Assembly (NCBI GenBank): GCA_028023455.1
Contig: JAQFVV010000010.1
Location: forward strand, 13,888,001 to 13,952,000
DNA length: 64,000 nucleotides
Origin: Epiperipatus broadwayi
Taxonomy: Eukaryota; Animalia; Onychophora
Reading direction: 5' to 3'
A model generated the notes under the pieces. The model had not been told where the DNA came from. It saw only the letters and a list, made by a program, of their open reading frames with translations, and made no database searches. Position 1 is the stretch's first letter. Each line of letters opens with the position of its first letter. Made by a program: the position numbers and the translations under genes. This document shows, piece after piece, positions 13,201 through 60,960 of the stretch.

Positions 13201-13574
13201 AGAATAAAAATAAATACAAACAATGCAGAATAAATGTCCTAAATTCTACAGGTAAAAATAAATTTAGGGCTCATCGTGCATAGCAATGTCACACATACAT
13301 CACCACTGAACAACACTTTGATTTTGTTTTTTCTTATTGCTTATCATTATAAAGCTGTTGTTGCAGAACTGTAGAATCGGCGTTTTTTTTTTATTTACAG
13401 AGCTTTAATAATACTTTGAATGTAGTTTTATTAGTAAGCCTGAAAATGCATAGGAAAGCGTCTATGTTTTCTGTTTTATTGTGTTTTTTGTCCCGTGAAG
13501 ATTACAGGGAGCTTTTAATGCAAATGGTACATTATATCATATTAATTTCTACATAAGTATGTAATTTGCTTATA

Positions 13575-13682
13575 AACATCACATGACCACCACTTCTTAT
13601 GCTTGTGTATAACTGTTGTTGAATCCATTGATTACTCTAGCTTGCTGTGTGTGGCAATACGTATAGTGAGTTTTGTCTGTTT
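13575..13682. mobile_element. Family A head-to-head mini insertion (locus A4)
   Basis: Minus fragment (aacatcacatgacc...) fused to plus fragment (...gttttgtctgtt); exact 13-bp TSD taatttgcttata at 13562-13574 and 13683-13695. Confidence 0.85.
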
Positions 13683-13705
13683 TAATTTGCTTATACTGAA
13701 TGTTT

Positions 13706-13996
13706 CCCATATATGTAAATAGAGGGATTTGAACCCCGGATTTTTTCAGTCTATTCATCCTCCATTATCTCGAGCAACCAATACACATGACCACACACAT
13801 GCGATAAAGATACATAAACCAAGCACTGATTGTATATATATATATGTGGGGGATTATGATCTGATCCAACTGATGAGTGCTGGTTATGTATGAAATACGT
13901 GTATTGGGGATAAAGTATCTTTTTCGCAAGTATGTGTGGTCATGTGTATCGATTGTTTGAGATAGAGTAGAGGATGAATAGACTTCTCTATTTACT
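13706..13996. mobile_element. Family B HHR-bearing repeat, head-to-head (locus B1)
   Basis: agtctattcatcctc...gataaagatac (13749-13813) is inverted relative to gtatc...gaggatgaatagact (13915-13985); HHR at 13866-13907. Confidence 0.75.
13866..13907 (+). ncRNA. Type I hammerhead ribozyme motif (family B)
   Basis: CCAA CTGATGA GTGC tggttat GTAT GAAA TACGTG TA TTGG: stem I CCAA/TTGG, full core, near-palindromic stem III, GUA triplet. Confidence 0.7.
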
Positions 13997-14648
13997 ATAT
14001 CTTATTAATAAATGTATGATAGATTTTATCTAAATCTGTGGGTTATTGTAATCACAGGACCTGAATAATTTTCATTGATTATAAACAAAATAATAAATCT
14101 AAAAATCAAAAATAATTTATTGAAAATGTAAATAAGCAGATTAATAATGAAAAAGTAAATATTATTAAGCTTGTAAGATATACCCCATGAGCATTTGCCG
14201 ATTGCTCAACAAGCTTTGTGATAAATGCTTAGCTGGAGAAAGCATTTAAAATCTCTATCAGGACCCCCCCCCCCAACCTCTGACCATGGTTTCATGCTTT
14301 GGTGCTCCTCAGAGAAGCGCTAGGGTAGCTTCAGACACTAGATCTAAAAATACCAACCCAAAGCCAGCATTTATCTAAAAGTTATCTATTGAGTGGAAAA
14401 TCTGAAAATTTTCAGACACTACATGTCTTCAAACCCAGCTATCCAACTCAAATAGCTATATGGGGCTGAGAGATCTTCAGCCATTCCATATATTAGTAGC
14501 CATAGCAATATAACATCACATAAGACTTAGGGCAGAGACTATAACTAGTCAAAATAAGAGTCATAGATCACATGACTCAATTATTAATTCAAACTTGTGA
14601 TTAATACCAAGGATTTTTTCTTACAATATTTTTCCTATATTTTGTTTT

Positions 14649-15302
14649 TAAAACAGACAAAACTCTCTATATGTATTGCCACTCCATGCAAGTCAGAGTA
14701 ATCAATTAATGCCAGAAGACTTGTGCATAAAATCCCCATCTAGTCCCTATTCATCCAATATCCCCAGACTAGTTTCTGGCTTGTGGCCTTTGTCAGTGAG
14801 GAGCCTTGGATCTGAGAGCACTGCACCTAGATCTTAGGATCCAATGCAACCCTCCAGCAGCCACCTTTTATCTATACTTAACTACAAAACCATGAGTCTT
14901 AAATTGAAAACTCTAATATTTTCAATTCAAGCTTATTAGCTTATATAGTCATATAGGTTTGAACTCAGTTCAGTACCATAACATTTTGGTGACTTTAGTT
15001 CTTTAATAATCATAGCCACCTAGGCAGGATTGGTTTTAAACCAATAAACATCACATGATCACCATTTCCTATGCTTTCTTATAACTTATTAAAACAGGCA
15101 AAACTCTCTATATGTATAGCCACAAGCCAGAAACTAGTCTGGGAATACTGGATGAATAGATACTAGATGGGGATTTTATGCACAAGTCTTCTGGCATTCA
15201 TTGATTATTCTGGCTTGCATGGAGTGGCAATACATATGGAGAGTTTTGCCTGTTTTAATAACAGTTATAAACAAGCATAAATAATGATGATCATGTGATG
15301 TT
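14649..15302. mobile_element. Family A head-to-head insertion (locus A2)
   Basis: Minus arm 14649-15116 (441-bp period; HHR 14761-14802), plus arm 15117-15302; exact 13-bp TSD tatattttgtttt at 14636-14648 and 15303-15315. Confidence 0.9.
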
Positions 15303-16120
15303 TATATTTTGTTTTCATTGCAATGAAGAGTGAAATTTTTTTCAAAAATTAACTTTAATATGGAACTATAGTATTTGGAATAATAATAGTGTACTCCAGA
15401 AGTAAAAATAAAAAGGCAGATTTTAAAAATACAAGTAAAAAACGTTATGGGGGTTTTGATTAAAATACGGAAATAAGATAGATTGTTTTATATGATAACA
15501 TTCATTAATTAAAATCTAAATCAAACATTCACTAATTAAAGTCTAAAATAAGGATTTACTAATTGAAGTAAAGTAACGATTTCTAATTAAAAACCAAAGT
15601 ACAATTAATTAATTAAAAGGACTGATAAGGATCAAGTGAAAGCAGAACAAAGGAGAAAAAGAAAGCGAAGCCGGGTAATTTTAAAAAACACATAATATTT
15701 TTTTTCCAGCTTGCTGTGTGACCGGAATGGGAATCTTTATATAGAGAAAGGGATATCCAAAAAAGGAGGTATAAGCCAGAACTAGCGGAGTCTGAAGGTT
15801 CCAAGATCTGTATAGGTAATTACAGATCTTCTCAATCTTATTATTATTTTTGTACACCTAAAATGGCTAATTTTAGAATACGGAATAATTAAAATATTAA
15901 TAGACTTTAAGAAGAGGTTTTGGCAAACCGGCCATCTTAGAATAGAACTGTTAGTGGGGAAATCGGACACGCGATTATGTATATAATTTCTTATATGTGT
16001 TATGAACTCAAAATTGTTATAAACTAAAATATAAATAAATTGCTGTATTCTGTTGTAGTAAAATTCTTTTTATTTATTTAATTTGTTACATGTGAATACA
16101 AAGCAAATTGGCGCAGTCGG

Positions 16121-31519: not shown

Positions 31520-32875
31520 ACTTAATGTAATTAGAAGGAACATGAACTCACTTTCACGTTCACTACAACTATGCCCTCCATCTTATATAATTGATACACA
31601 TCAGCACATAGATATGACAAAGATAAGTGATGTTCAATACAAGTATTTTATGCTAAACCAGCATTCATCAGATCAGTGCTCAGTTTATATTAAAATAGCA
31701 AATCATCAAACTTTAATAGACAAGCTTCAATTTTCTCCATCCCCCAATTCTTCAGCCATCCATATTATTGAAAATCTGATGATAGAACACTTAAAGCCCT
31801 TGTTGATGCCAATATTATTGTCATACCCATGTTGATGTTAGTCACTCTGACCCCTCACATAAAGGAATTTAATATATCTATTTAAATACACAAAAGAGGG
31901 ATGGGCAGAATACAGGCTGCATATGTAATATTCAAATCTATTATCTATATTAAAGTTAATGGAATTAGACTTTCAAGCTCGCTACATTTATGCACTACAT
32001 CTTATACAGCTAATACACATGGCCAAATACATGTGAAAAAGATAAATGACCTTCAATATTCATATGTTGTGCTGAAGCAGCACATCAATTGGTCCAGATC
32101 ACAATTTCCCACACATATATGTAATCAGTGTTCAGTTTATACTAAGACAGAAAATCACCAAACTTTAATGGACAAGTTTAAATCTTCTCTACCCTCCACT
32201 CTTCAGCCATCCATATCATTGTAAAGTCTATAAAGGAATACTCAAATCCCTTGATGATGCCAGTATTATTGCCATATCCATGTTGACTTTAAGGCCCTCT
32301 GGCCCATAAGACCTTAATATGTCCATTTAAATATACAGAGAAGGGATACTCCCTTCTAATTACATTAAGTTTAGTATAGACAATATACTTATATTTTTAA
32401 ATTACATTGCCCATCCCTCTTGTGTATTTAAATGGACATATTAAATACCTATATGTGAGGGGTCAGAGTGACTTAAAGTCAACATGGGTATGACAATAAT
32501 ATTGGCATCAAGTACTATCAAAAGATTTACAAAATAATTTCTCATTTAAAATTTATCTTTAAATTTATTACCACATAAATACTTCAGAACTTATTTAATT
32601 GAATTATTATAGCATTCAATAAAAGAATAGCCTGTCCATTAAAGTATGAAGATTGGCTATCTTAATATAAGCAGGAACATTGATTGTATATATGCGTGGT
32701 GATGATAATCTGGACCAACTGATGAGTGCTGGTTTAGCATGAAATATGTATATTGGTGATTATTTATCTTTTCAACATGTGTGTGATCAAGTATATCAGC
32801 AGTACGAGATAGCATGGATAGTTGAGGTCATGTGAAAGTCTGAGTTCAAACCCCCTATATATTACCTATTGGAGT
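31520..32875. mobile_element. Family B cluster (locus B2): two minus-strand tandem units (~450-bp period), then plus-strand arms
   Basis: aaactttaat(a/g)gacaag at 31708 and 32160; inverted copies at 32405-32520 and 32630-32875; HHR at 32714-32757. Confidence 0.75.
32714..32757 (+). ncRNA. Type I hammerhead ribozyme motif (family B, best preserved)
   Basis: ACCAA CTGATGA GTGCT ggttt AGCAT GAAA TA tg TA TA TTGGT: 5-bp stem I, full core, 5-bp stem II, stem III, AUA triplet. Confidence 0.75.
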
Positions 32876-37081: not shown

Positions 37082-38040
37082 ACATTTTAAGCTAGAAGAA
37101 AAATACAAAAAAAAGGCTTGATTTAAATTCAAAAAAAAAATAATTCACCTCTTTTTATTTTTTCCGTAAAGTCACCCTGGAAAATCTCACCATAAGGAAC
37201 ACTTTATTAAAGTTTCCCAATTTGTGCTTGAACTTTGCTGCTTTGCAAGAGTGCAATAGTTTATCTCTGCATGGTCAGTTTTAGCATATAGATGACTTCT
37301 TTGGTTATAACTCTATAACCTACTTTTTTCCTTCTTATTTTGTAATCCAATAGAATGTAATTTGCTATGAAGGAAAAATTTTAAACTTTTGACCTGGCAA
37401 ATCATATTCATGACACTAAATAAAACCAAATTCATGAGAGAGAGGAAGCAGAGAATGAATATATAAAAGGGTAATTGATATTTACATTGAATGGTTTACA
37501 TATTACACTTGTGTGATAAAGCAATTCATAAATCCTTTTTATTTATCCCATAGATGTTGTTGGCAATAAATCAATTGTTGTGTGCAGCACATTATTCCTC
37601 ATATTTTTCCTCCTGTCTGTTTTCCTGTTTTAAAGGTATGATGCCTTTATACTGGCAGTATAAGGTTTGGGTTGGTCAGCTCACATTTTATCTGGTGGTT
37701 TCTTTGGGATATCAAAGTCAATTGCAGTTTGTAACCCGACTTTCTTCAATGCTACATTTGTTGCTCAATCTTATTCCTAAGCTATACGACTGATCACTTA
37801 GTTCAATCAATTTTTTAATCTTATTTTATTTTAAGGCTACAGAGGTTTCAACTATCTTGGTATATAATCTCTTTTAGAGATGACCTTAATAACATCATTA
37901 TATAATTGTTAATTAGAGAAGATATTAATTAGTATTAAAGTTTATTGGCTTAACGTTTTCGAGGATCCATGCCTCATATTTATAGCCTTCATAAAATGTA
38001 TAATAAAATATGCAAATACAAATATTCAAATAAGCTAGTA

Positions 38041-40230
38041 TTACGTAGCCCATTTCTTCGAGATCTCGAAGCAAGTATCCTTTCTATTAATGGCATGGAT
38101 GTTTCCATTGATGTAAAATGCCTCCTTTATTTTTCTTTTGTGATCATTTGATTCTGAGCACAATATTATGGGATTGGCGGGTGTGAAGTTGTGTCCAGAT
38201 TGTTTAGCATGCTCCAAGAATACAGAGGATGTGTTGCTGTTTTTCTGAGCTCTGTTAAATGTGTAAATATGTTGACCCAGTCTAGTATTGATTGTAGCTT
38301 TCGTTTCACCATAATATATAGCATGGCATCCAGCCTGAGGGCAGGCAATAGAGTACACCACGTGTGGGGTGAACGATCGATCAATGCGGTCTTTAGAGTT
38401 GTTAAGCAATCTATTAGAATTAGGTGGAGTTCTAACTGCTATGTTAAATTTATCGTTTAATGCTTTCATTAGTTTGTTAGATATTTTAGGAATGTAGGGG
38501 ATTGTTATTCTAGGTAGTTTGGTGCGAGGTACATTATTGTTTATATTATTAAATTTTATGATTTTATTTTTAATAGCTTTGAATTTGAACCCTGCTGCTA
38601 ATAGATCTTTAATATAGTTGTTTATGTTTTCTTTCCTGTCTGCTTCATATTTACATAAATAAAAGTTTCTAAACAAAAATGCATTAAAGCCAGCAAATTT
38701 ATGCGATGCAGGTGAGTTAGAGTTAGGGTGGATACAGCTGCGAATTTCAAATGGTTTAACAATCATTTTGTAATCTATTAAGTGGCAATTTCTCGATAAA
38801 GAGAGGTCGAGATATTTAAGTTCTTTATTATTTTCATATGTGATGGTGAATGAAAGTTTGGTTAAGTTTTGTAAATCACGTAGTATATTTAAAGTATTAT
38901 CTTTAGAGGTTATGATAAAGATATCGTCTACATAACGAATATATGTAAAGTCTTGGTTGATATTGTGATATTTTGGAAGGATCGATAACTCGTATTTATT
39001 TAAATATATGCTAGATAAAACACCACTGATAGGAAGGCCCATGGACCATCCATCTTGCATTGTGTACCACTTGTTTTCAAAGAGTGTAAATATATGTGAA
39101 TCAAGCCATGACAGGAAAGCAATAATGAATTTAAATCTTTCACTAGGGCAATGTGCTCGCAGTAGCTCTTCGTGTACTATTTGGATAGATGCTTTTCGAT
39201 TAATTGATCCGTATAGTTCCTTCACATCCATTGTAGCCATAATTGAAGTCTGAGAGATTTGAGTATTTTTGATTTTGGAGATGAATTGGAGAGACGAGTT
39301 TATCGTGTATGAGCCAAAATTAAGGTAATCTATAAGTAATTGATTGATTAATTTGGCTGCTTCAAAATAATGCACACCACCGAAATCCATCATCAATCTA
39401 AGTGGTTCGCCTGTTTTATGTAGTTTTAAATTGGCAAACATTCGGGGGGGGGGGGGTCTAGTGGCAGAAGGGTAAATCCTGTAATATTCGGATTTAGTAA
39501 TCCCTTTATCCTTGAAAGTCCGAAGCACATTGTTAATAAATTTATCTCGATCTAGTTTAATATTAAAAGAGTTATCATGCACCAACTTTAATATTTTAAT
39601 TTGGTCGTGCATTTTATTTTTATAGTCTGTGTTATTTAGCACAACAAAACGATTGCCTTTGTCTTCTTTGAGACAAGTAATATTGTGTGTTTTGAAATAT
39701 TGTTTGGTATTTAATATACTTTTATTCCATGCTTTTCCTTCTTTATCAACCAAATTGTTATTTAATAGTTTAGATATATCGGTGATGGTAGCATCTCTTT
39801 GTATATTGTTAATGAGACTCGCTTCGATGTCTGCTATTAGTTCGAGTTTAGGAGATCTCCAACTTCCTCCTACATATTTCGGTCCGAAGGATAAAATTTT
39901 CTTGATTTCATATGGTGGTGTAATTGAAGTTTTGTTAACGAACGCGTCTGTATTAATCCTATGGCGATATTTGTTTTGCTTGATAAGCAAAAAATGTATT
40001 TTATTTTCAAATTTTGCTGTATGAAATCTCTCAATTTTATGCAGTTTATCTTGCATCCACTGGGGGATTAAGTAGTTCGCAGTCATTTTATTCCATCTGA
40101 TTGTTTGCTTTTTGAAAGCATCTCTACATCCATATGTTATATGCGCCAAAAGCTGTTTCTGCAATTCATTCTTAATTTTAAAATTATTGTATATTGTTCT
40201 ATTGATTTTAACCACACAACAATTGGGCAT
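38041..40230 (-). CDS. Penelope-like RT / GIY-YIG endonuclease polyprotein (~729 aa, uninterrupted)
   Basis: RT motifs TMDVKELYGSI, QDGWSMGLPIS, YIRYVDDIF; VVYSIACPQAGCHAIYYGET...H...EHAKQSGH GIY-YIG. The ORF-track start (40368) lies in the antisense of the other arm, so ATG 40230 (MPNCC) is the plausible start; 5' truncation is possible. Confidence 0.9.
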   Translation of the reverse strand: MPNCCVVKINRTIYNNFKIKNELQKQLLAHITYGCRDAFKKQTIRWNKMTANYLIPQWMQDKLHKIERFHTAKFENKIHFLLIKQNKYRHRINTDAFVNKTSITPPYEIKKILSFGPKYVGGSWRSPKLELIADIEASLINNIQRDATITDISKLLNNNLVDKEGKAWNKSILNTKQYFKTHNITCLKEDKGNRFVVLNNTDYKNKMHDQIKILKLVHDNSFNIKLDRDKFINNVLRTFKDKGITKSEYYRIYPSATRPPPPRMFANLKLHKTGEPLRLMMDFGGVHYFEAAKLINQLLIDYLNFGSYTINSSLQFISKIKNTQISQTSIMATMDVKELYGSINRKASIQIVHEELLRAHCPSERFKFIIAFLSWLDSHIFTLFENKWYTMQDGWSMGLPISGVLSSIYLNKYELSILPKYHNINQDFTYIRYVDDIFIITSKDNTLNILRDLQNLTKLSFTITYENNKELKYLDLSLSRNCHLIDYKMIVKPFEIRSCIHPNSNSPASHKFAGFNAFLFRNFYLCKYEADRKENINNYIKDLLAAGFKFKAIKNKIIKFNNINNNVPRTKLPRITIPYIPKISNKLMKALNDKFNIAVRTPPNSNRLLNNSKDRIDRSFTPHVVYSIACPQAGCHAIYYGETKATINTRLGQHIYTFNRAQKNSNTSSVFLEHAKQSGHNFTPANPIILCSESNDHKRKIKEAFYINGNIHAINRKDTCFEISKKWAT

Positions 40231-40250
40231 AATATTATAATCCTTGCATT

Positions 40251-42440
40251 TGCCCAATTGTTGTGTGGTTAAAATCAATAGAACAATATACAATAATTTT
40301 AAAATTAAGAATGAATTGCAGAAACAGCTTTTGGCGCATATAACATATGGATGTAGAGATGCTTTCAAAAAGCAAACAATCAGATGGAATAAAATGACTG
40401 CGAACTACTTAATCCCCCAGTGGATGCAAGATAAACTGCATAAAATTGAGAGATTTCATACAGCAAAATTTGAAAATAAAATACATTTTTTGCTTATCAA
40501 GCAAAACAAATATCGCCATAGGATTAATACAGACGCGTTCGTTAACAAAACTTCAATTACACCACCATATGAAATCAAGAAAATTTTATCCTTCGGACCG
40601 AAATATGTAGGAGGAAGTTGGAGATCTCCTAAACTCGAACTAATAGCAGACATCGAAGCGAGTCTCATTAACAATATACAAAGAGATGCTATCATCACCG
40701 ATATATCTAAACTATTAAATAACAATTTGGTTGATAAAGAAGGAGAAGCATGGAATAAAAGTATATTAAATACCAAACAATATTTCAAAACACACAATAT
40801 TACTTGTCTCAAAGAAGACAAAGGCAATCGTTTTGTTTTGCTAAATAACACAGACTATAAAAATAAAATGTACGACCAAATTAAAATATTAAAGTTGGTG
40901 CATGATAACTCTTTTAATATTAAACTAGATCGAGATAAATTTATTAACAATGTGCTTCGGACTTTCAAGGATAAAGGGATTACTAAATTCGAATATTACA
41001 GGATTTACCCTTCTGCCACTAGACCCCCCCCCCCCGAATGTTTGCCAATTTAAAACTACATAAAACAGGCGAACCACTTAGATTGATGATGGATTTCGGT
41101 GGTGTGCATTATTTTGAAGCAGCCAAATTAATCAATCAATTACTTATAGATTACCTTAATTTTGGCTCATACACGATAAACTCATCTCTCCAATTCATCT
41201 CCAAAATCAAAAATACTCAAATCTCTCAGACTTCAATTATGGCTACAATGGATGTGAAGGAACTATACGGATCAATTAATTGAAAAGCATCTATCCAAAT
41301 AGTACACGAAGAGCTACTGCGAGCACATTGCCCTAGTGAAAGAGTTAAAATCATTATTGCTTTCCTGTCATGGCTTGATTCACATATATTTACACTCTTT
41401 GAAAACAAGTGGTACACAATACAAGATGGATGGCCCATGGGCCTTCCTATCAGTGGTGTTTTATCTAGCATATATTTAAATAAATACGAGCTATCGATCC
41501 TTCCAAAATATCACAATATCAACCAAGACTTTACATATATTCGTTATGCAGACGATATCTTTATCATAACCTCTAAAGATAATACTTTAAATATACTACG
41601 TGATTTACAAACTTAACCAAACTTTCATTCACCATCACATATGAAAATAATAAAGAACTTAAATATCTCAACCTCTCTTTATCGAGAAATCGCCACTTAA
41701 TAGATTACAAAATGATTGTTAAACCATTTGAAATTCGCAGCTGTATCCACCCTAACTCTAACTCACCTGCATCGCATAAATTTGCTGGCCTTAATGCATT
41801 TTTGTTTAGAAACTTTTATTTATGTAAATATGAAGCAGACAGGAAAGAAAACATAAACAACTATATTAAAGATCTATTAGCAGCAGGGTTCAAATTCAAA
41901 GCTATTAAAAATAAAATCATAAAATTTAATAATACAATAAACAATAATGTACCTCGCACCAATCTACCTAGAATAACAATCCCCTACATTCCTAAAATAT
42001 CTAACAAACTAATGAAAGCATTAAACGATAAATTTAACATAGCAGTTAGAACTCCACCTAATTCTAATAGATTGCTTAACAACTCTAAAGACCACATTGA
42101 TCGATCGTTCACCCCACACGTGGTGTACTCTATTGCCTGCCCTCAGGCTGGATGCCATGCTATATATTATGGTGAAACGAAAGCTACAATCAATACTAGA
42201 CTGGGTCAACATATTTACACATTTAACAGAGCTCAGAAAAACAGCAACACGTCCTCTGTATTCTTGGAGCATGCTAAACAATCTGGACACAACTTCACAC
42301 CCGCCAATCCCATAATATTGTGCTCAGAATCAAATGATCACAAAAGAAAAATAAAGGAGGCATTTTACATCAATGGAAACATCCATGCCATTAATAGAAA
42401 GGATACTTGCTTCAAGATCTCGAAGAAATGGGCTACGTAA
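40251..42440 (+). pseudogene. Disrupted second copy of the PLE ORF
   Basis: Same protein broken by a C12 versus C13 homopolymer (~41030), a CGA>TGA stop at 41281 and a 1-bp deletion near 41610; YADD instead of YVDD. Confidence 0.9.
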
Positions 42441-42493
42441 TACTAGCTTATTTGAATATTTGTATTTGCATATTTTATTATACATTTTATGAA

Positions 42494-42534
42494 GGCTATG
42501 AATATGAGGCATGGATCCTCGAAAACGTTAAGCC
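42494..42534 (+). ncRNA. Hammerhead-like motif with A3-U8 core variant in the PLE 3' end
   Basis: GGCT ATGAATA t GAGG catggat CCTC GAAA ACGTT A AGCC; mirror copy at 37947-37987 (-) has G5>A. Confidence 0.65.
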
Positions 42535-44244
42535 AATAAACTTTAATACTAATTAATATCTTCTCTAAGTAACAATTATATATTTTACATATAGTGAGAA
42601 GTAAAGCTATATTTATCATTATATAATACATATTTTCTAAATGACTGGATGAAATGAGTCTCATAAGTTCATATAACTAATTGTTGTGCTTTGGCAGTTT
42701 CTATTGCAGTTACCATGAATGAAACTGCTGATGATAGTTTTGTTTCCAATGCAAAAAATATGGGATGAGACAAATTACTTTGTTACTCATTATGAATTCT
42801 TTGAATTATACATTCAATGTCACCTAATCTCTTTAAAATGTTGCTATCATCGTTAATTACATTAAATTCAGGAATATGATTTTAATTCTGTGTCTGTTAT
42901 GTAAGGCATGAAAATTGCTTGTCAAATTATCATCCTTCTTGCTATAGAAAGCAAATTCCTTTTGTACACAAAGAATTCCTCCAAAAATTAAATCAATAAA
43001 CAATGTCTTAATATCTGATAGTTTTTGTTACACCAATGTTCTATGTCAAGCTTTAAATCAGCATAAACACAATCCATGTGACAGTGAATTGTTTGTTGTC
43101 CCAAATTTTGCTATCTTCAGCTTTTTTTGTCTTGTGTCATATTCTATTACTTCTTTTTCAATCCCTATACTTTGATCTGAGTGTTTTATAATATGACCTC
43201 CTTCATCTTCCATCTTTTTCTCTGATTTTCTCCATTTTTTTGTTTGAATTTTTTCAATTAGATCTTTGATTTTTGTAAGGTCTACCAATTGTTTTCATTG
43301 ATACACTTTATTGCTGGTCCTACATTTCCTTAATTTGTTTTAACATCTGTTCATGCTTCTTGCTGGAATATTCCTTTACTTGTGTTTGGCTTTTTGCAAA
43401 TCTTCTTTTATTTGTCTTTGGTTGTGTGCCAAATCTTCTTTCATTTGTTTTATCATTTGTCTCATATTTTGTTCTCTATAAATATAGCAAACAGGTATGT
43501 TTGTTTTTATCTGACTCCTCCTTTTCTTTTTTAAACATTTCTATCAGGGCTGCCTGTTTGCCATACACTATTTTACTTGGCATTTTGAAAGTAATTATAG
43601 GACTTTGTTCTTCATCTGATTTGTCCACTGGCTCTGGACTTTCATTCTCATGAATCATCATGTCAAATTCTCTCCTTTCATCTTCAATACTATTATTCAT
43701 TTTATTTTTTAATTTTATTTTCAATTAATTAGCTGCCTTTCCAATAAACCATTCAGCAAATCAGTATCTATAGATTTCCTTTTAAAATGATCCATCTATC
43801 TTTAGTATTTACATTAAAACTGGCCAACAGCAACAAAACAAACTCTTACTTCTGTGCCAATATATAACAATGGAATTATTAAGAATATATATATATTGTA
43901 ATGGTAAGACTAGCATAGTCCACAATTTTACATTTTCTCTATTTACATAAATTACATGGGCACCACCTGGCTTTAAGCATGAGAAAATAAACAAACACAT
44001 GTGTATCTAAAACAATATTTTATTCAATATAATAATGTAACCATTACATGGTCCTATTTGTAATGCCAGGTTAAATCATGGTGAACATAAGTTACACCTG
44101 ATGAATGATGGTAGACCAAGCAATCTTACATAAACAAAGTAACAAATCATGCAATAATAATTTATTTACGAGTGTATTTATTAATTGAGGCACAATTTAT
44201 TTTCTTTAATAAAATTACCAAATCATATAATAATAATTTATTTG

Positions 44245-44474
44245 TTAAAACAGGCAAAACTCACTATATGTATTGCCACACACAGCAAGCTAGAGTAATC
44301 AATGGATGCCAGAAGGCTTGTGCATAAAATCCCCATCCATCCAATATCCCCAGACTAGTTTCTATCTTGTGGCCTTCATCGGTGTGTGTGGAAATACGTA
44401 TAGTGAGTTTTGCCTGTTTTAACAACAATTACACACAAGCATAAGAAATGGTGGTCATGTGATGTTTATTGGTT
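44245..44474. mobile_element. Family A head-to-head insertion (locus A3)
   Basis: Minus arm 44245-~44385 ends inside the HHR (44347-44386); plus arm runs to 44474; exact 14-bp TSD taataatttatttg at 44231-44244 and 44475-44488. Confidence 0.9.
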
Positions 44475-46844
44475 TAATAATTTATTTGCAAAGTATAATC
44501 ATTAATTGATATGCAATTTACTTATTTTAATAAAATCCTTTAATTTTTATACGTCATAGCATCAATATATTTATAGAAAATATCACATTCACCATTTTTT
44601 ATCCTGTCTTCAATAAACTTAAATATAATTCTATGCATGTGTGAATTCATAAATGTAACATTTCTTCGACTTGCATGCTCCCTAATATTTATATATACAT
44701 ATGATCTATATAGGATAGACATTAACACTACCTTTATTACAATAATCATAAGGAATGGCTTTTTTAGGTACTATTCCTAAACATAACCACTTATATAATA
44801 ACTATAAAGAGATGGTCTTTTATTCCGAACTCTAACCGAATAAACCTTCTATACCATAATTATAAATAGTGGCCTTTTTGGTCCTAAACCTAATTTAATA
44901 CAACTACAATTTATATAGGGATGATTCATTCTGAGATTGATCCCTAACTCATCAAACTGATAGGAATGTATTTTCCCCTACGGATGTGAACATAAGTAAA
45001 CTATTAAACATTGAACAAACAATTGCATATAAAATCCAATTTCAGTAATCAAATATGAGTTTAACTATGATTGAATGAGACTAATGGAGATAATTACATC
45101 GTTAATTATGGTTGTTTGTGACTTAAACAATTTATATGACTACATTAAATTTACATAATTATCATTATTTCTTTATCTTTTCCTTTTATTAATAACTTAC
45201 ATATAATTCATAAACTTAGCGTATGTGTGTGATATATAATAATTTTTTTTTCTTTTAAAAAAATAAATTTATCATGTGAAGAGAAGTTTTTAGAAATTCA
45301 TTTTTTATTTTTTTACTGATAGTTTCTTTTACATACATTTGAATAACAAGCATTATTTACAAATTCCAATTATTTAAAACAAAATAATTGTCATTTACTT
45401 CCATTTATGGTGAAATTTAATACAGTCTTGCAATTTCTGTCTTTTAAATAAGTTCCAATTCTTCATTTTAGCCGGAGTTATTCAAAATATGATTCAAAAG
45501 TGTTATTAGATTAGATTTATCTATCTGTTAATGATGTTCCTTTTTTATTCACAAGGCATATCTATCATGGGATTTAAATAAAGTAGTATTCCCTTCTGAT
45601 CCAAAAGAATAAAACTGATTCCTATCAAAACTTAGTTTTCTCTCCTGGATCTTGTTTTAGTTCTCTTTTTAATAAAATCAAATTTACATATCATATCATT
45701 TGTTAGGAGAAAAATTTTTTTTTTGTTATTGAAATGAATAATGGTTGTTCATTTCAATATATAATTTATAATCTTTGTAATCATGGATTTAACAATATCA
45801 AGTTATGTTTCAGAGTTTAAATGGTAATAAAAGAAAATTATTTAGTAGGTAAAATTAAATTATCTCATAGGTAGGTGGCTATTAATAGCACCTCACATTG
45901 GGTACCAAATTTTAAAAAAACTTACGTATTCGTCAAAATATACAGCCTGCAAATCTTACTTTCATGAATACCTTTCTCTGCTACAAATACAACTGTGTCC
46001 CTCGTTTTCTTTTTTTTATCACTTAGATCAGCATGATACACATGATTTTAATTAAATAACAAAACATAAATACTATAATTAGTTCAAAACAGATAAATAA
46101 AACTTATATGCAAATAAAACAATGGAGCTTTATTAGTGGGAAATTTATATACAAATTCACATAACAAGGGTATGTTGGAATTAATTTTTTTTTTTATCAA
46201 CTCTTAGATTAACAGTGAATGAATTAAGGATTTAAATATAACCTCTTGATGATTTGTTAGTTCATAGTCTTTTATGAACTCAACAATTGTTGATAGTTTA
46301 ATTAGGTTTAAATATAAAAGCTTGATCAATTTATTATCTATAATAACTCATTTAATGATTACAAAATAGACTAATTAATTATCAGCTCATAATTATTTGA
46401 TGAATATTTCAAGTTAATGTTTTATATATTTTTATTATTAGTTATAATATTAGACTGATATAGTTTATTGCCAATTATTGCTTCTTATCTTACATCATGC
46501 TTAAAGTTTAAAGGGAGATGACTATTGTAAGCAACATGTGACTCAAACAATAGACAAATATGATACGCTACTCTCATACCATATAATTATTCATGGATGA
46601 ATAATACAACTGCTAACTAGGAATAGCATTATAAAATAAACTTTAGATCTCAATACTAGCCAGTTTTAAATCACTTATATCATATAATCAACTTTACCTT
46701 CAAAACAAGCAAAAATACATCATCAATAGGTTTAAAATACTTTACACTAACATGTTATTTTAATATTGACACACTCTCTGAACAGTAATGCCATCTAGTG
46801 AAAGCCATAATAATCGATGAATGCAAGATTTGTCAAAATCTGTA

Positions 46845-47880
46845 TTTAGTGCCTACTTATCCAATATTCCGAGACAACTTTCTAGCATGTGGCTTTCATC
46901 AGTAAGGAGCTCTGGATCTAATGCAATCCTCCAGCAGCCATTGTTTATTTTTTTAATTATCTTTAAATATATGAGCTCAAATTGAAAACATGTTTTTAGT
47001 TCAAGCTCATTCACTCATATAGTCATATAATCTGAAACTAGTCCAGTATCTATACATTTCAATGTCTTTGGTTCTTTAATAATCATAGTCAAATGTGGCT
47101 GCTGGAGGTTTGCCTAAAACTTAAGATCTTGATGCAGTACTCTCAGATCCAAGGCTTCTCACTGATAAAAGTGACAAAGTAAAAACTAATCTGGGGATAT
47201 TGAATGAGTAAGCACTAGATAGGGATTTTATGCACAGATCTTGGATTCATTGATTATTATGTCTTGCACTGGGTGGCACTATTGTATAGAGGAGGGTGAA
47301 CATAGAAAATGGTAATCATGTGATGTTTTGTGGTATAATAACATTCCTGCCCATGAAATGATGGTAACTATGGTTATTAAAGAATCAAAGACACCAATTA
47401 TACAAATGAATAAGTTTAGATTGAAAACATTATCTGTTTTTATTTTGGATTCGTAGCTTTATAGTTAACTAAAAAAATAAAAAGTGGCGGCTGGAGGGTT
47501 GCATTAGATCTATGAATTATGTGCAATGCTCACATATTGAAAGCTTCTTGCTATTGAAAGTCTGGATGGGACTGCTGTATTATACAGTGATTATACAGAA
47601 AGTGGGTTATTGGTTTTTATGCTGGGTTTGGGAAAAGATAAGGTGTATTTAGATATAAAGACCATAGAGTTGATAAAGATTAGGTTGTGGAAATGGGATG
47701 GAGCAGATTATGGTTGGGAATGGAAAGGAATGGTAAAGTGGCTAACAGGTTTCTCTGGGCATAGTTGCTGAGAGATTCCCGACTCCGTATAAGGAGGTCA
47801 CAGTGCCTCACATCACATCACTGTTTTAACAACTTGTGCAAGCATGGGGAATGGTGATCATGTGATGTTTAGTGATTTTA
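46845..47880. mobile_element. Family A older head-to-head cluster (locus A5)
   Basis: Minus arm ~46845-47090 (HHR core CTGATGA...GAAA...GTC at 46867-46908); plus arm longer than one unit from ~47092; unrelated ~280-bp segment at ~47545-47825; no TSD seen. Confidence 0.75.
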
Positions 47881-49679
47881 TTTTAATATTCATAGGATAA
47901 CTTTTCATCAGGCAAATGAATTGAACTTCAATATGGTAAAGGATATAGTAAAAAAATATTTGGGATATTAGTATGATGTCGTAGAAGGAGGAGAATGAAT
48001 ACCAGATAATGATTATTACAAAAGCTGAGCATTATAATATATTAAAATAATAGTTGTATTCTAGTATCCAACTAGACATAAGGGAGAATGATATCTTCAA
48101 GTATATAATCTTATTTTATTGCAGGAAATGTCATCTGCTTTAACCATGATTATTTATATATTAAAAATGACAGCCTAGATCTAATATTACCGAAATCCGG
48201 TATACCATTTTAAAAAGTGCCTTAATTATACATGAAAAGCATTTCTCAGCACACACCAAATCAATGAAACTATTAGACATGAAAAACATTTCTCAGCACA
48301 GATCAAATCAATGATCATGTATATATAAAAGCATGAGTTAATTGAAAAATATTAAATTTTTTAGGAAATCTATTATTAAAACTTAAGGAGTAATTAATAA
48401 ACAAAAAAAAATTATATTTAGGGTAGTATTATACATCCAATAATAACGTCACTTACTCTCTCATTATAAACTTAAACTAGATTGTACCCGCACAGTAAGC
48501 ATTTCTATTGAGAAGTTAAAGCAGTCTTTTAAAAAAAATTAATAAGAAAAATTTATAATAATTTGTTTGGATACATGGTTATTTATTTTATAAAGATAAA
48601 TCACTTAGTATTTATTGTTTGTAACAATACAGATTTATTAGTAGGTAGACAATTTATACTTTAATCGTCAAATGACTAACATACTTATAATATAATGTGT
48701 TTTTGTATTTTCACAGACCCAAGCTATTAGTTATCTTTTTATCCCAATTAAAGAAAATTATATATATATAATCAAAGTAACAAGGTGGTATGAGGTATTT
48801 TAAAAAGAACAAAATAATTGTATAGTTAACATCTAGCCTGAGAAAATAATGTGCTAAATAATTTGAAGATTAAATAGTCAAGATTTCTCATACAACATCA
48901 CACTTTCTTTTAAGTAAAATTCTAAAACTAAAATATTCATATAGCATTAATGATAATAAATATAATGATAATAAAAAAATGAAAACAAAATATGTACTTT
49001 AATTTATAATCATTGTTAAGATAAGATAGAATGTTAAAGAGTCACATAAAATAGCCATTTAAAGTTCGATTGAAATATTCAGATCACCGAAAGTTTATGG
49101 TTTTAAAAGGTCAAATAAATCAACCACTTATGTATTTGTATAGGATCCAGAGTTTAAATAAGAAACAAACATAGCTATGTTTAAGTGTGGTGCTTCCTGT
49201 TTATTCATTTTGAGATATTAGCTTTATTCCTTGCGTTCCTTTATAAAGACAATTTAAGTATTGACATTTATTTGGTGACTTTTTTTTTTGTTAAACCTGT
49301 TCTTCCAGGCACAAAACTTAATTTCATGCATTTGGAAGATTAATACAGGAGTTATATTCGTATATGGCTGTATATATTCACTTTCGAATGATATTACTTT
49401 ATGGATTCAGACAGGCAGACTTTCTGTTGGCGAAATATTATATACAATCTCTCTTGTGAGGATTATAAACTATCATCGGAAGATCAGCTGACTGGGAAGG
49501 ACTGCTCTGTTCTAGACGATGGTTCTTCTGATATCTATGTTGTTAGCTCTATCAAGCAGAGCTTCCGGTAATAAAGTTTTTAGAGAAGAGTCTTAATAAT
49601 GGAATTTCATCAATATTTTTTTTAAAAATTTAGAAACTTTAAGATTATCAACAGACCTGCACAAGAATTTCCCATTAAA

Positions 49680-52603: not shown

Positions 52604-52918
<315 letters not shown>

Positions 52919-53493: not shown

Positions 53494-56490
53494 TTCATCA
53501 TCATCAACCATTATCAATCCACTGCAGGATGAAGGTCTCTCCAAGTTCAATCCATTTTTTTTTATCTTTAGCTTCTCTTCTCCACATTACCCCTGCACAC
53601 TTTTTTATTTCATCCATCCATCTCACATGTGGTCTCTTTCTGGGTCTTTTACAACCTTTGGAATCCAGTTTAAAATTTCAATTGACCATTTATTATCATC
53701 TCTTCCAACAATATGTCCAACCCAATTCCACTTTAGTCTTTTAATTTTTTCAATGAGGTCAGTAACACCTGTTTGTTCTCTTACCCATACATTGCGTTTT
53801 CGATCTCTTCTTGTTACTCCCAACATGTATCTCTCCATACTTCTTTGAGTGGTCTGAAGTCTCTGTATTGCTCTTCTATTAAGTGTCCAAGTCTCAGATC
53901 CATAAGTAAAAACTGGTAAAACACATTTATTAAAAACCTTCCTTTTCAAACACATAGGCATAGTTCCTTTTAGTATCAAGTTATTTCTACCAAAAGCACT
54001 CCAACCAAGTTTAATTCTATGATTAATTTCATCCATTATATTTCCATCTGTATTAATAATCTGACCAAGGTATTTGTAACTGCTAACTTTTTCCAACTCA
54101 TCATAATCAATCTTTATTTTCATATTTTGAGAAAATCTATTAAACATTATCTTAGACTTTTTAACATTTATCTGTAGTCCTACTTTCCTACTTTCATCTG
54201 ATAACTCCTGCAACATTTCCTGTAGCTCTAAAGCATTATTTGCAAAAAAAATAACTACATCATCTGAAAAATCTAAATGACTTAAATAATCTCCATTTAC
54301 TTTCATTCCTTTAGCTTCCCATTTTAATCCACAAAATACTTTTTGCAGCACTGCTGTAAAAAGTTTTGGAGATATGGAGTCACCCTGTTTTACACCCTTT
54401 TCAATGTTGATTTTCCTACTATCATTATGTAATCTAATTGTTGCTGTTGCATTTTTATAAATATTCTTTAAAATATGACAATATCCTAGATCTACACTTT
54501 GATGATCCAATGCTTTAATCACTGAAGAAATGTTTATAGAATCAAATGCCTTTTCATAATCTACAAATCCTAAGCATAATGGCAACTCAGATTCATTTGT
54601 CCTTTCTATAACTTCTCTCAATACCTGGATATGATCTACTGTACTAAAATCACTTTGGAAAACAGCTTGTTCTCTTGGTTGGTGGAAATCCAGTGTTTTC
54701 TGTAAACGAGTTGTAATTATCTTAGTAAAAATTTTATATAAAACTGATAAAAGACTGATAGGTCTGTAATTTCTAATATCTCCTTTATCACCTTTTTTAA
54801 ATATTAATATTATTACTGCATTCTTCCAATCATCCTGTACATCTTTATCATTTAGACATTTGGTATATAACTTTGCTAAAAAAAATTCTATTTCTTCACC
54901 TGCTTCTTTTAATATATCAATTATAGTTCCATCATTACCTGGAGCCTTCCCTTTCTTCATAAATTTAATTGCATGTCTCACTTCTTCATTCAAAATTCTG
55001 GGCAATTCGGAAGATATAATAGATATAGGAGGCACTTGTTTTTTGTTACTATATAATTCTTGATAAAAATCTTCTACACATTTCATGATGTCATCTCTCT
55101 TTTTAGTAATAATGCCATCTTTTTTTCTTATTGTAGATATAAATTTCATACCAATACCAAAATGTTGTTTTACATTCTTTAGACATTTATTCTCTTCTAC
55201 AGCTTTCCTTGCTAGTTCACAATTATACTTTCTTATATCATTTTCAACTCTTTTCTGCACCATTTTACAAAATTCGAGATATTCAATCTTTTTTAATGCA
55301 TCATTGTTGTATATCCTTATATTCCTTCTTTTCTTCGTAAATGCTCTAGTCTCAGTAGAAATTTTATTGGTCAATTGCTGCTTTCTTCTACCAGCTATTT
55401 TTGTTGCAGTTTTCAAAAGTGTATCAGTTATTTTCCTATTAATGTCGTTCAAATCTGAATCATGTTCAAAATCTACTAATACTTGAAACCGATTTGTAAG
55501 TTCTAATTTAAATTCATTAGAATGTTTCTGAAGATTAGGAATATCAACTGTAAATATTGTTTTTCTTAATAATTTTTGTCTCTCTAGTTTTGCATTAACA
55601 TGTATCTTACATCTTACTAATCGATGATCACTTCCTGTGTTAAATTTATTAAGAACATTACAATCTTGAAATATGTATTTTCTATTAGTCAAAATATAAT
55701 CCAATTTTGCTGTACCTTCATTTGGATGCTTCCATGTCCATTTCCTTTTAACATTTTTTTTCAAAAAAAGAATTCATAATATAAAGTTTTTCTTTTTCTG
55801 CAAACTCCACAAGTCTATGTCCTCTCTCATTTCTATTACCATAACCAAAATTATCTACAGCATTTTCATCTTTCATTTGATTACCAATTCTAGCATTAAA
55901 ATCTACCATAACAATTTTAAAATGTTGTTTACTCTGATCAAAAGTCTTTTGTACATCCATATAAAAATCTTCTACTACTTCATCACTATGAGAACTTGTT
56001 GGGGCATAAACTTGAATTATCTGCATTTGGTATCTGCTATTAAGTTGTAAAACTAATCTTGCCACTCTGTCTGATAAACCATCAATCTCCACAATGTTAT
56101 TCTTCCATTTTTTATTTATAATGAATCCTACTTCACTTGTATTTCCAATATTTATGCCTTTATAGTAGAGTATATAACCACTTTTTAAATCAATTGTTTT
56201 TTCACCTTTTCTTCTAACTTCACAAAGTCCAATAATGTCCCATTTAATATAAGACAGTTCTTCTTCTAACTCTTGCAATCTTCCTTCATATGAAAGTGAT
56301 TTGCAGTTGTAAGTACCTAAATAAAAAGTCATCATCAAATCGCAGCCTGAATCCATAATCAGGGGATTCTTAGCACCTCCACCTTCAGCCACCAACTGCT
56401 GCCTTGGTTGGTGACTTTACAGCCTCCTGGGAATAAGGGCCATGATTTTTTTTGTCTGTCATGATTATATATATTGGAAAAAAATATTAT
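53494..56490 (-). pseudogene. RTE-clade LINE, near full-length, frameshifted (APE plus RT)
   Basis: ORF pieces 55748-56395 (APE: GTYNCKSL, WDIIGLCEVRR) and 53623-55764 (GSDHRLV, KAPGNDG, YRPISLLS, LDFSDD); (TGA)n tail at ~53495; collinear with 60961-63960. Confidence 0.93.
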
Positions 56491-56786
56491 TAAACTTGGA
56501 GGCAAAAAGCCAATAAACTCACCACGCTGGCTAATGCATGTTGGTGAGCAGTCCATCCATGTTTGTATACTATATGAAGTAATAACAGCCGCAACAACAA
56601 TAATGTATGGAGTGGACATTAGGAATTTGCCCTGCTTGGTTCCTTTAACGCCTCCAAGAGTAATCAAAGGGTCTCCTTTCAGTTAATAGCAAACTCCTTT
56701 CTGCAGTCTTGATTTTTATTACATTTGTATAAATAATTATAGTAAAATATTTTGAATATTGCCTAATCCTATACTAATAATCTTAA

Positions 56787-57170
56787 ATAAAATAGAAATT
56801 TCATATAACATTACAATACTAGCCAAAAAACAAAATTTTACTAAAATTCTTTCACAATCATGATTTTATCTATTAACAAATAGATCTTTTCAAATGAAAT
56901 TCGACTAAACATATGACATATACACAAAACAAAATAGTCTTTCCATCATTGACCTCAAAAATCAATTTCCTTTAACATCAAGGGATGGCTTTATGAGATT
57001 TGATGTTAAAAGATGTTTTTTTTAAGTGAATGATGGGAAGGCTATTCTGTTTTGTATATATATATGGTATATTTAGTCAAATTTCACTTGAAAAGACAGT
57101 TGTGAAAGAATTTTAATAAAATTTTGTTTTTTGGCTAGTATTGTAATGTTATATGAATTTCTATTTTTTT
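56787..57170. repeat. Imperfect fold-back with ~190-bp arms
   Basis: aaaatagaaatttcatataacattacaatactagccaaaaaacaaaatttt / aaaattttgttttttggctagtattgtaatgttatatgaatttctatttt; centre aacatcaa...ttgatgtt. Confidence 0.85.
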
Positions 57171-57207
57171 TTCTATATAATAATAAATATTTTTCAATGC
57201 TTTGTAG

Positions 57208-57243
57208 CTCTGAGGAAGACTGCTGAGCAGTCGAAACTGTAAG
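57208..57243 (+). ncRNA. Isolated minimal hammerhead-like motif
   Basis: CTGAGGA a GACTGC tga GCAGTC GAAAC t GTA; stem I is only 2 bp. Confidence 0.5.

Positions 57244-57367: not shown

Positions 57368-57420
<53 letters not shown>
57317..57420 (+). repeat. Compound microsatellite (ATG)n-(ATA)n
   Basis: Directly visible. Confidence 0.97.
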
Positions 57421-57421
<1 letters not shown>

Positions 57422-58672: not shown

Positions 58673-58836
58673 TTGTTAACTGAACACATGAATGCAAGTT
58701 TGATTATGGGCAAGATTCCAGCTGAACTACTTGTGAATTGAACATTGAGGACTAGTTGTTAACTGAACACATGAATGCAAGTTTGATTATGGGCAAGATT
58801 CCAGCTGAACTACTTGTGAATTGAACATTGAGGACT
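58673..58836 (+). repeat. Tandem duplication, 83-bp period
   Basis: ttgttaactgaacacatg at 58673 and 58756. Confidence 0.95.
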
Positions 58837-59919
58837 TATTTTTGATCAACAATCCTGAATGCAGACATATATTTGAAATAAAACAGATTATAAACAAATT
58901 CTAATCTGGTATTAATATACTGAGTTTTATGTATTGAGATGCCGGGGACAAAGTAGATTTCTGCTTTTATCGTGTTTAAACATGTCTTCAAGTATTTGCT
59001 GTAAAACCATAAGTATTAAGTGTAAATAGTCATCAAATGAAAGAAATCTATCCAGAAGAATTTATTAAAGAAAATCAACAAAATAGTGATGTTGACACTG
59101 CCACAAAAAATATTCATCTTTCTAACGAGAAAATATCATAAAAAGAAATATATGAATTTGATGATACCCAAAATGCATTGCAAATGATATAACAATTGAA
59201 TAAATGTTTTCAAGTAGTGGCAAATATTGTAAACAAGTTTATCTAGCTTACCTTCAGCCTATGATAAATATCAAAACAAGCAAGCTATAAGTATCTGGGG
59301 GAAAAAAACTACAATTAATAAATATATCAACTGAAAGAGCAAAACTTTATATCCTACTTGATTTTAACTACTAAGAACACACCTGCCGAGTGTATTACTA
59401 TGGGTAACCTGAGGTTCATTTGGTTATTGGGAATCTACTAACTGTAGAACAGTCATACTAAACTAATACAACATCATAAGTTTTGCTGAAAATAAAGTAA
59501 AAATCTATTTATAAACTAATTTTCCAAATAGAACTAACTGCTAGCTTATTTCTATATTGGATAAACCAGGAATGGTATCTATATATTAGCCATTTGTAAC
59601 AGAGGCTTAGAAGTAACAATTGATATCAGTTATCAAACCAAATCTGTTTGAGCATGAAATTGTAAATAGTTTTTTTTAAAAAACTAATCTTTATGTCCAA
59701 ATATAACTCTATATATGTAGGGTATCTATAATTTGACAGGTTTAACTGGAACACACGACCAAAAAAAATTGTAAATTACTGTATATTTCAGTACAAAATG
59801 AAAAAAATCAAAAAACATATAATCAATTTACATTACTAACAATATACTTATTTCATAACATAAACAAAAGCAAAAGAAAATTGTTTGTATACATATATTA
59901 TCTATTAAAATGAATCCTG

Positions 59920-59990
59920 TGATGTTTGGCCTAGTTGGTACAGTGTCCAGTTTGGGATTGGAAGGTCCCAAGATTCGTGGTCTGGTGCTC
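59920..59990 (+). pseudogene. tRNA-like (Pro-TGG-like) degenerate sequence
   Basis: A-box-like tggcctagttgg; anticodon-like stem-loop tccag tttggga ttgga; B-box degraded. Confidence 0.35.
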
Positions 59991-60332
59991 AAACTTCTTA
60001 TGAATTCCTGAAAAATAAATTCATATGCCTTTTTTAAAAAATTAAAACAAAATCACAAATTGAAATCATGTATTACACCTATACCAAATTAACGGGGAGC
60101 CATTTCCATTTAAAGAAAATTACAGTTGATTAACTAATCAAAAAATTAATTATAAAATATTAAATGAATAAATATTTATAAAAAATAAAAATTAAATATA
60201 ATGTTAAAATTAAAGTAAAAATGAGAGGTTAAGAAAACTGGGACTTAACTGTCCTGAAAGTCTATGTCAGGATACCGGAATAAGAGGGCTAAAACTGGAA
60301 TGTATGTACACCCATTGTATATATATGAGTGC

Positions 60333-60445
60333 TAAACCAATAAACATCACATGATCACTATCTCTTATACTAGCACATTCTGGCATCCATTGATTACTCT
60401 GGTTGACACAGGGTGGCATTACTGTATGGAGAGTTTTGCCTTATT
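60333..60445. mobile_element. Family A head-to-head mini insertion (locus A6)
   Basis: taaaccaataaacatcacatgatcac (minus) joined to ctggcatccattgattactctgg...gagagttttgcc (plus); exact 13-bp TSD tatatatgagtgc at 60320-60332 and 60446-60458. Confidence 0.85.
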
Positions 60446-60960
60446 TATATATGAGTGCCCCAGTAACATATATTTTTATTATATTCTGTTCCCAATATGT
60501 ACAATATTAATCATAAATTGTCAATATACTGAGAGAGAGTGTAATGAACTGGCCTTTTTTCTATTTTTTAAACAATTTCCTGCTTAAATGAAGTACTTGT
60601 GATAGTCAATGTTTGAAGAATTCAATAATAACGTATCATTTGGGTTACAACCAATATTATTATTTTCAATAATTTTGGGTCATAATTGGTTCTACCGGTC
60701 CACATTTTAAATTCCTCTCTGAATTCTGTGAATTTGTTCTTAGAATTTAAGCACTGATAGATACCATTGCATAAAATAATTGTTAATATCACCACCTTTC
60801 ACTTAGTATATTTAAAAATTTCAGAAATATAAAGAGCCAAGATAGAGCTTAAAATAAATTTAATATCATACCATTTTGTTCCACATGTAATTGACTTATC
60901 GAAAAACAAACTTGTAGCTATCTTAAATAAACCTTCAAGCATCACATGATCACATCTCCA

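Follow-up and report, generated by a model that had tools for sequence, protein, structure and literature searches.

Head-to-head insertions of a probable retrozyme family in Epiperipatus broadwayi bear the signature of Penelope-like elements

Introduction

How does a short noncoding repeat come to sit in a genome as two inverted arms inside a single target-site duplication (TSD)? The question is raised by a stretch of 64,000 nucleotides (nt) from the onychophoran Epiperipatus broadwayi (GenBank assembly GCA_028023455.1, contig JAQFVV010000010.1, forward-strand positions 13,888,001 to 13,952,000), which we refer to as the window. The window is AT-rich (about 24-33% G+C) and holds six loci, A1 to A6, of a repeat that we call Family A. 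An initial annotation had described these loci as fold-backs with outer ends fixed at two sites and had proposed that both nicked target strands prime reverse transcription. Our analysis indicates that Family A is probably a hammerhead-bearing retrozyme of about 440 nt, of the type without long terminal repeats (non-LTR). It would be mobilized in trans by a Penelope-like reverse transcriptase (RT) with a GIY-YIG nuclease, primed on both target strands, and inserted as two complementary DNAs (cDNAs) joined head to head.

In insertions of endonuclease-bearing Penelope-like elements, a TSD surrounds an insert that includes an inverted 5'-truncated copy and bears a tail of 30-40 bp at one end (PMC3846280, PMC8557442). 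The 2024 in vitro study of the green anole Poseidon element PAc showed that the purified protein acts on both target strands, cleaving and extending them, and that it starts at two adjacent internal sites whose spacing matches the genomic tail (PMC11167929). In that study, the steps after initiation are still to be validated (PMC11167929), and an earlier genomic study preferred hairpin self-priming (PMC3846280). Animal retrozymes, in turn, have been described as non-autonomous derivatives of Penelope-like elements (10.64898/2026.07.22.740005).

Results

Every Family A match that BLAST or nhmmer returned within the window belongs to one of the six loci (Table 1), and neither search returned a simple, non-inverted copy there. 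At each locus, an inverted, 5'-truncated copy stands head to head with a direct one, both 3' ends pointing outward (6/6), and one TSD encloses the inverted and direct arms together (6/6). Five of these duplications are exact and 13-14 nt long, and that of A1 is degenerate. The exact duplications claimed initially for A2, A3, A4, and A6 each occur twice in the window, on the plus strand and directly outside both arms, and the imperfect one claimed for A1 is present as well. The exact duplication at A5, where nhmmer shows a detached tail segment, is an addition to that list. When pairs of random 30-nt windows were drawn 100-700 nt apart, they had a 13-mer in common in at most 0.06% of trials; since real repeats contribute to this figure, it is an upper bound.

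As a ruler we took the longer A1 arm (4031-4509, reverse strand), and Family A positions were also mapped on a tripled monomer. The first 38 nt of this arm recur after 440 nt, which defines a unit of 440-441 nt. Several arms read through from one unit into the next, head to tail; those of A1 and A2 cover 1.07 units and that of A5 covers about 1.6. The unit is noncoding, with no open reading frame (ORF) of 130 amino acids or more in the read-through arms of A1, A2, and A5.

The ends of the arms were aligned to two read-through copies, with coordinate 0 at the last A of …CTGTTTTA on the read-through copy, which we call site 1. One arm ends here, at 0 to +2, in A1, A2, A3, A4, and A6, and 8 nt short of it in A5. 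In 6/6 loci the opposite arm, and that arm alone, carries a tail of 44-54 nt. This tail ends at about +44 (…GTGATGTT, sub-site 2a) in A2 and A4 and at +48 to +54 (…TGGTT, sub-site 2b) in A1, A3, and A6; the tail of A5 also ends at 2b. The initial annotation had placed both outer ends at two fixed sites about 50 nt apart. Site 1 and the unlike ends of A1-A4 and A6 were borne out, but the second site consists of two sub-sites about 10 nt apart. The sides do flip with orientation, site 1 being on the left in A1-A3 and on the right in A4 and A6. With end positions and TSD lengths tabulated for the copies in the window, the outer ends are clustered and the two arms of a locus never end at the same site. 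Together with a Penelope-like pair described below, unlike ends are found in 7/7 insertions of the window, an outcome expected at most once in 128 times, or (1/2)^7, if the ends were independent.

Primer and template also appear to have sequence in common where the arms begin. At least 3 nt are shared with the read-through sequence at 7 of the 12 outer junctions, when about 4% per junction would be expected at this base composition, in agreement with the earlier remark that junction bases overlap the TSD. Furthermore, the choice between the two sub-sites tracks the last bases of the primer in 4/4 pairable cases: at 2a, …ATA is matched by UAU, and at 2b, …TTA is matched by UAA.

The inner ends are less regular. 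They are unequal within a locus, at -471 and -160 in A1, -474 and -139 in A2, and -150 and -37 in A3. At the inner joint of A2, the 3' ends of the two cDNAs overlap by 5 nt (GCCAC). As had been noted, inner junctions are variable and several fall in or near the hammerhead; three are at or within the ribozyme (-160, -150, and -139). None of the Family A inner junctions that we mapped lies at the hammerhead cleavage site (-117). An apparent clustering of inner joints (three at -31 to -37, two at -62 to -69, and three at -139 to -160) was not significant with eight to ten ends and was set aside. The tailed arm extends less far upstream in 5/6 loci; in A5 the tailed arm is the longer one, which breaks any rule that the tailed arm is always shorter, and we keep this pattern only as a hint.

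How the two arms relate to each other differs among loci. Over the 140 nt before site 1, the paired arms are 92.1% identical in A1 and 92.9% in A2, compared with 86-90% against the arms of other loci, and both pairs have locus-specific variants in common. The proposal that each locus records a single insertion event was upheld by this mutual closest relationship of the A1 and A2 arm pairs and by the one TSD around both arms. The two arms of A4 meet exactly at site 1, to within about 2 nt, and those of A6 come within about 10 nt of each other; neither locus has any overlap. In a DNA sequencing run (X1), 10 contigs from continuous copies align up to 13617 and resume on the opposite strand from 13685. 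These opposite-strand joints show that the two segments of A4 are neighbors in the element, with the break at site 1. The label of fold-back does not suit A4 and A6, which are inverted adjacent segments.

A5 stands apart from the other loci. Although its TSD is exact, the two arms agree at only 72% and neither is the other's nearest relative. The arms were probably already unlike at the time of insertion, which hints that two different RNAs can act as templates. In addition, its sense arm holds, besides about 1.6 monomers, an unrelated segment of about 260 nt. This segment (47553-47815, in the right arm) is G-rich, foreign to Family A, and takes the place of the stretch from the ribozyme to site 1; it may stem from template switching or mark a chimeric subfamily.

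The site-1 arms of A1 and A2 bear on the nature of the template. They span 471-474 nt of a 440-nt monomer and run through the ribozyme, its cleavage site, and both start sites. An arm of more than one unit that crosses these features implies that the template was uncut, in the form of a multimeric or circular RNA, and the same read-through implies that sites 1 and 2 are internal in the template.

The putative ribozyme was recognized by pattern search as a minimal type-I hammerhead motif, consisting of CUGAnGA, a short helix II, GAAA, a 6-nt palindrome as helix III, and UC. It occurs in six Family A arms, and every copy departs from the motif at one or more points of the core or of helix I. Rfam returned microRNA-like matches on the palindromes, which we rejected as spurious. 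A region at 14247-14470 is weakly similar to Family A, yet it is a member of a different repeat.

Copies elsewhere in the genome were compared by means of the contigs of the same DNA run over 13400-15500 (2.1 kb), on which 206,085 contig pieces were placed. Summed depth reaches millions over Family A, whereas the unique flank averages about 70-115 (one contig alone has about 35 there), and such depth figures do not give copy number. Among the loose ends listed, those with unrelated, AT-rich continuations include one at 13572, with 364 contigs that continue to sub-site 2b and then lose agreement, and others at 15034-15037 (sub-site 2b) and 15259-15261 (site 1). These loose ends at sub-site 2b and site 1 give partial support to fixed ends across the genome. 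Family A contigs are present in three RNA-type libraries, from which contigs of the unique flank are absent. Ten organisms share exact Family A 31-mers, which indicates that the family is spread across related species. Over the same 2.1 kb, differences from copy to copy are mostly C>T and G>A, as expected from CpG decay in a methylated genome. The interval between A4 and A2 (13700-14640) consists of further high-copy families, among them the repeat at 14247-14470; their contig depth in the DNA run sums to 10^5 to 10^6.

At 4.7 kb, the window's largest palindrome is a head-to-head pair of 5'-truncated Penelope-like elements. The two arms of 2.3 kb are 98.8% identical and lie within a 13-nt TSD, with a 32-nt tail on the right side only; the tail-less end has 8 nt in common with the target. 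The ORF of the arm contains RVT_1 (E 6e-9) and a YVDD box, and its translation shows a GIY-YIG-like motif near the C terminus. Pfam gave no GIY-YIG match in the C-terminal 249 residues, which were the part searched, and the nearest atlas clusters of the ORF carry RVT_1, GIY-YIG, and HTH_animal.

Table 1. Family A loci, hammerhead motifs, and the Penelope-like pair in the window. Spans are in Family A coordinates (site 1 = 0).
Feature	Position	Strand	TSD	Arms	Site-1 arm span	Tailed arm span
A1	4018-4747		4018-4034 and 4732-4747; degenerate, 16-17 nt, about 14/17 positions in common	antisense 4035-4506 to site 1, 1.07 monomers; ~13 nt filler; sense 4520-4731 to sub-site 2b	-471 to 0	-160 to +48
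A2	14636-15315		TATATTTTGTTTT, 14636-14648 and 15303-15315; exact, 13 nt	antisense 14649 to ~15118, site 1, 1.07 monomers; sense ~15119 to 15302, sub-site 2a	-474 to 0	-139 to +44
A3	44231-44488		TAATAATTTATTTG, 44231-44244 and 44475-44488; exact, 14 nt	antisense 44245-44384 to site 1; sense 44385-44474 to sub-site 2b; overlap ~40 nt	-150 to 0	-37 to +54
A4	13562-13695		TAATTTGCTTATA, 13562-13574 and 13683-13695; exact, 13 nt	antisense 13575-13614, tail only, to sub-site 2a; sense 13616-13682 to site 1; no overlap	about -65 to 0	+1 to +44
A5 (diverged subfamily)	46755-47890		TTATTTTAATATT, 46755-46767 and 47878-47890; exact, 13 nt	antisense 46768-47091, 8 nt short of site 1; sense 47091-47877 to sub-site 2b		
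A6	60320-60458		TATATATGAGTGC, 60320-60332 and 60446-60458; exact, 13 nt	antisense 60333 to ~60371, tail only, to sub-site 2b; sense ~60372 to 60445, site 1; no overlap	-69 to 0	about +8 to +53
Hammerhead motif, best kept (pattern search)	4532-4561	+				
Hammerhead motif, decayed (pattern search)	4154-4183	-				
Hammerhead motif, decayed (pattern search)	14767-14796	-				
Hammerhead motif, decayed (pattern search)	44353-44382	-				
Hammerhead motif, decayed (pattern search)	46873-46902	-				
Hammerhead motif, decayed (pattern search)	47162-47191	+				
Head-to-head pair, 5'-truncated Penelope-like elements	37894-42627	.	ATCATTATATAAT, 37894-37906 and 42615-42627	antisense 37899-40233; 14-nt spacer; sense 40248-42582; tail 42583-42614		

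Discussion

The anatomy of these loci, read together with published in vitro work on another Penelope-like element, suggests how Family A may be inserted. A nuclease would make two nicks 13-14 bp apart in AT-rich DNA, as judged from the TSDs, leaving two 3' overhangs. Each overhang would prime the copying of an element RNA, multimeric or circular, from a fixed position inside it. One cDNA would begin at site 1 and its partner at sub-site 2a or 2b, 44-54 nt farther downstream, and pairing of about 3 nt between the primer end and the RNA would usually help to set the start. Both cDNAs would extend upstream for variable lengths, and their 3' ends would then be joined, sometimes via microhomology. 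The expected product is a pair of head-to-head arms with 3' ends outward, a tail on one side, and a single TSD around the whole. We infer from the anatomy that the target strands act as primers. Specifically, a single TSD, outward 3' ends, fixed internal starts, unequal inner ends, and the microhomology of A2 are what reverse transcription primed on both target strands predicts.

This account retains the core of the mechanism proposed in the initial annotation, namely both-strand priming at fixed internal sites and the joining of two cDNAs, but the mechanism is not new, having been published for Penelope-like elements. The footprint is a known one, of which Family A is a clean and fresh example. 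What our analysis adds is modest: the strict pairing of unlike ends, starts guided by microhomology, a geometry that speaks against self-priming, and the hint of two templates in A5.

Other routes to inverted arms have to be weighed. In hairpin self-priming, one cDNA folds back and copies itself into the inverted arm. This has been published for Penelope inverted repeats with palindromes at the turn (PMC3846280), and it would suit the Penelope-like pair of the window (37899-42582), a symmetric palindrome with a spacer of only 14 nt. We consider it improbable for Family A, where A4 and A6 have no stem, their arms being non-overlapping, and where the inner ends of the two arms differ in A1, A2, and A3. 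Furthermore, the snapped-back copy of a tail-less cDNA could not gain a tail, yet it is the arm reaching less far upstream that carries the tail in 5/6 loci.

Could the arms instead record two independent insertions, a second copy having landed in opposite orientation beside or inside the end of an older one? Such self-targeting is very unlikely given that a single TSD surrounds both arms in every locus with no internal TSD, and it would leave the exact abutment in A4 to chance. The variants that the paired arms of A1, and those of A2, have in common also count against it. On its side are the arms of A5, which are only 72% alike and not closest relatives, and the behavior of the anole element, which nicks AT-rich DNA, its own repeat included (PMC11167929). 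Finally, inverted arms within a TSD bear a superficial likeness to miniature inverted-repeat transposable elements (MITEs). We see almost no chance that Family A is a fold-back or MITE-type DNA transposon bounded by terminal inverted repeats, or that its palindromes arose afterwards by changes in the DNA. The termini differ by the 44-54-nt tail and are not identical inverted repeats, the inner joints vary, and A4 and A6 have no inverted repeat. In addition, the arms follow the order of a 440-nt unit repeated head to tail and can be longer than one unit, and an RT-encoding Penelope-like element bears the same footprint.

Reverse transcription primed on both target strands of a hammerhead-bearing RNA remains our preferred explanation, but a number of observations weigh against it or against the identity that we assign to Family A. 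None of the hammerhead copies in the window retains both core and helices intact. Rfam gave no hammerhead match in the whole window or in 3900-4800, whether gathering scores were applied or E values as high as 10 were allowed. The Family A contigs of the RNA-type libraries could derive from carry-over of DNA from a very abundant repeat. An empty-site joint is not among the joints listed for the DNA run (1148 others lie outside that list), a comparison that is no test of empty alleles. The window has no autonomous partner with a 3' end like that of Family A, its sole Penelope-like element being unrelated there when judged by eye. Lastly, the anole element has a reported stem-loop (PMC11167929), whereas the starts of Family A commonly show homology of about 3 nt, and no stable or conserved structure was found at them. 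Folding z-scores for the region from site 1 to site 2 are -0.6 to +1.4, revealing no conserved RNA structure at the start sites, and its consensus fold of -2 kcal/mol comes without compensatory change, which leaves a start-site stem-loop unsupported.

A further, more tentative suggestion is that the two start sites are coupled. Two primers held in one nuclease/RT complex might engage site 1 and the adjacent tail site of one RNA, with 2-3 bp setting the start nucleotide. The tail-side cDNA might then stop at the site-1 primer, as in A4 and A6, or trail behind by strand displacement, as in A1-A3. We would not yet lean toward this view, which draws on the unlike ends in 7/7 insertions, the exact abutment of A4, and the shorter upstream reach of the tailed arm in 5/6 loci. 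Against the use of one RNA is A5, in which an exact TSD encloses arms that are 72% alike and the tailed arm is the longer; the divergence of its arms implies two different template RNAs at least sometimes. If true, coupling would amount to a coordinated step of tandem twin priming that is described neither in the in vitro work nor in earlier genomic surveys.

Family A resembles published Penelope-like insertions (PMC3846280, PMC8557442) in its partial tandem read-through, its hammerhead motif upstream of the ends, and its AT-rich targets. It differs from them in being a short, noncoding unit without an ORF and in having a longer tail (44-54 nt as opposed to 30-40 bp) with two alternative end points. 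Its TSDs are a uniform 13-14 bp, compared with 8-10 bp in rotifer examples (PMC3846280, PMC8557442), and some of its insertions contain little beyond the tail and 60-70 nt. Like PAc (PMC11167929), Family A has its ribozyme about 90-120 nt upstream of the start sites. In vitro, ribozyme cleavage is unnecessary for insertion (PMC11167929), which agrees with the uncut template of Family A. The bulk assay used for PAc is blind to how start sites are paired within one event (PMC11167929), whereas the genomic copies of Family A always have unlike ends.

Similarities extend to the animal non-LTR retrozymes (PMC7229834; 10.64898/2026.07.22.740005), which likewise have a noncoding unit of a few hundred nt, low in GC, with a type-I hammerhead motif. 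Family A is also like them in its head-to-tail read-through, in TSDs of more than 4 bp, in the presence of Penelope-like elements in the genome, and in very high copy number. The ribozyme, however, is a minimal, dimer-type variant, in contrast to the canonical retrozyme type with loop-loop contacts. Head-to-head insertions are not described in the retrozyme papers, which deal with tandem arrays and circular RNAs (PMC7229834; 10.64898/2026.07.22.740005), and the word "inverted" does not occur in the text of PMC7229834.

L1 twin priming offers another comparison. As reportedly set out by Ostertag and Kazazian in 2001, a staggered break leaves two 3' overhangs, each of which acts as a primer on the RNA. 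Family A is like L1 twin priming in having an inverted and a direct part within one TSD and microhomology at an inner joint, and A4 and A6 have exactly its non-overlapping geometry. Family A differs in having no poly(A) anywhere, in that both starts are fixed internal sites, and in the overlap of the arms in A1, A2, A3, and A5; moreover, the inverted form is found in 6/6 loci and is not a minority outcome. The initial annotation had set Family A apart from twin priming. The missing poly(A) and the overlap in A1-A3 sustain that distinction, but it was overstated because the arms of A4 and A6 do not overlap. The overlap in A1-A3 can arise on a template that is multimeric or circular, as is needed in any case for the arms of A1 and A2 that exceed one monomer. 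A paper search gave no literature in which Penelope-like elements and twin priming are treated together.

Taken on its own, the anatomy seen in the window already counts against self-priming for Family A, which is otherwise an ordinary example of the published signature. Its wider value may be as a large natural record of single integration events, as the insertions are abundant and very short, with clean 13-14-bp TSDs and ends defined at the level of the nucleotide. A census of Family A could address the coupling of start sites, the use of one or two template RNAs, the weight of primer-template pairing, and the joining of cDNAs.

Other features of the window

Hammerhead-like motifs also occur outside Family A. 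A near-perfect palindrome of another family (1421-1779) has arms of 136 nt that are 99% complementary, and its center (~1563-1600) resembles a complete hammerhead, with CUGAAGA, a GC-rich helix II, and CGAAAC. Another such motif (57195-57240; CUGAGGA, stem, GAAAC) lies just to the right of a fold-back with 73-nt arms at 56785-57172, around which there is an apparent TSD of about 13 nt with one indel (~56768-56781 and ~57171-57183). Nested inverted repeats at 31566-32824 contain two minus-strand hammerhead-like motifs (31719-31755 and 32171-32206), and this cluster is probably another ribozyme-bearing family.

Two ORFs of the long interspersed nuclear element (LINE) type, with an apurinic/apyrimidinic (AP) endonuclease domain and RVT_1, are found on the minus strand at 53623-56395 and 60980-63967, and A6 sits about 500 nt to the left of the latter. 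A sequence at 5674-5745 resembles a transfer RNA and lies barely over the Rfam gathering score (32.3 bits against 29).

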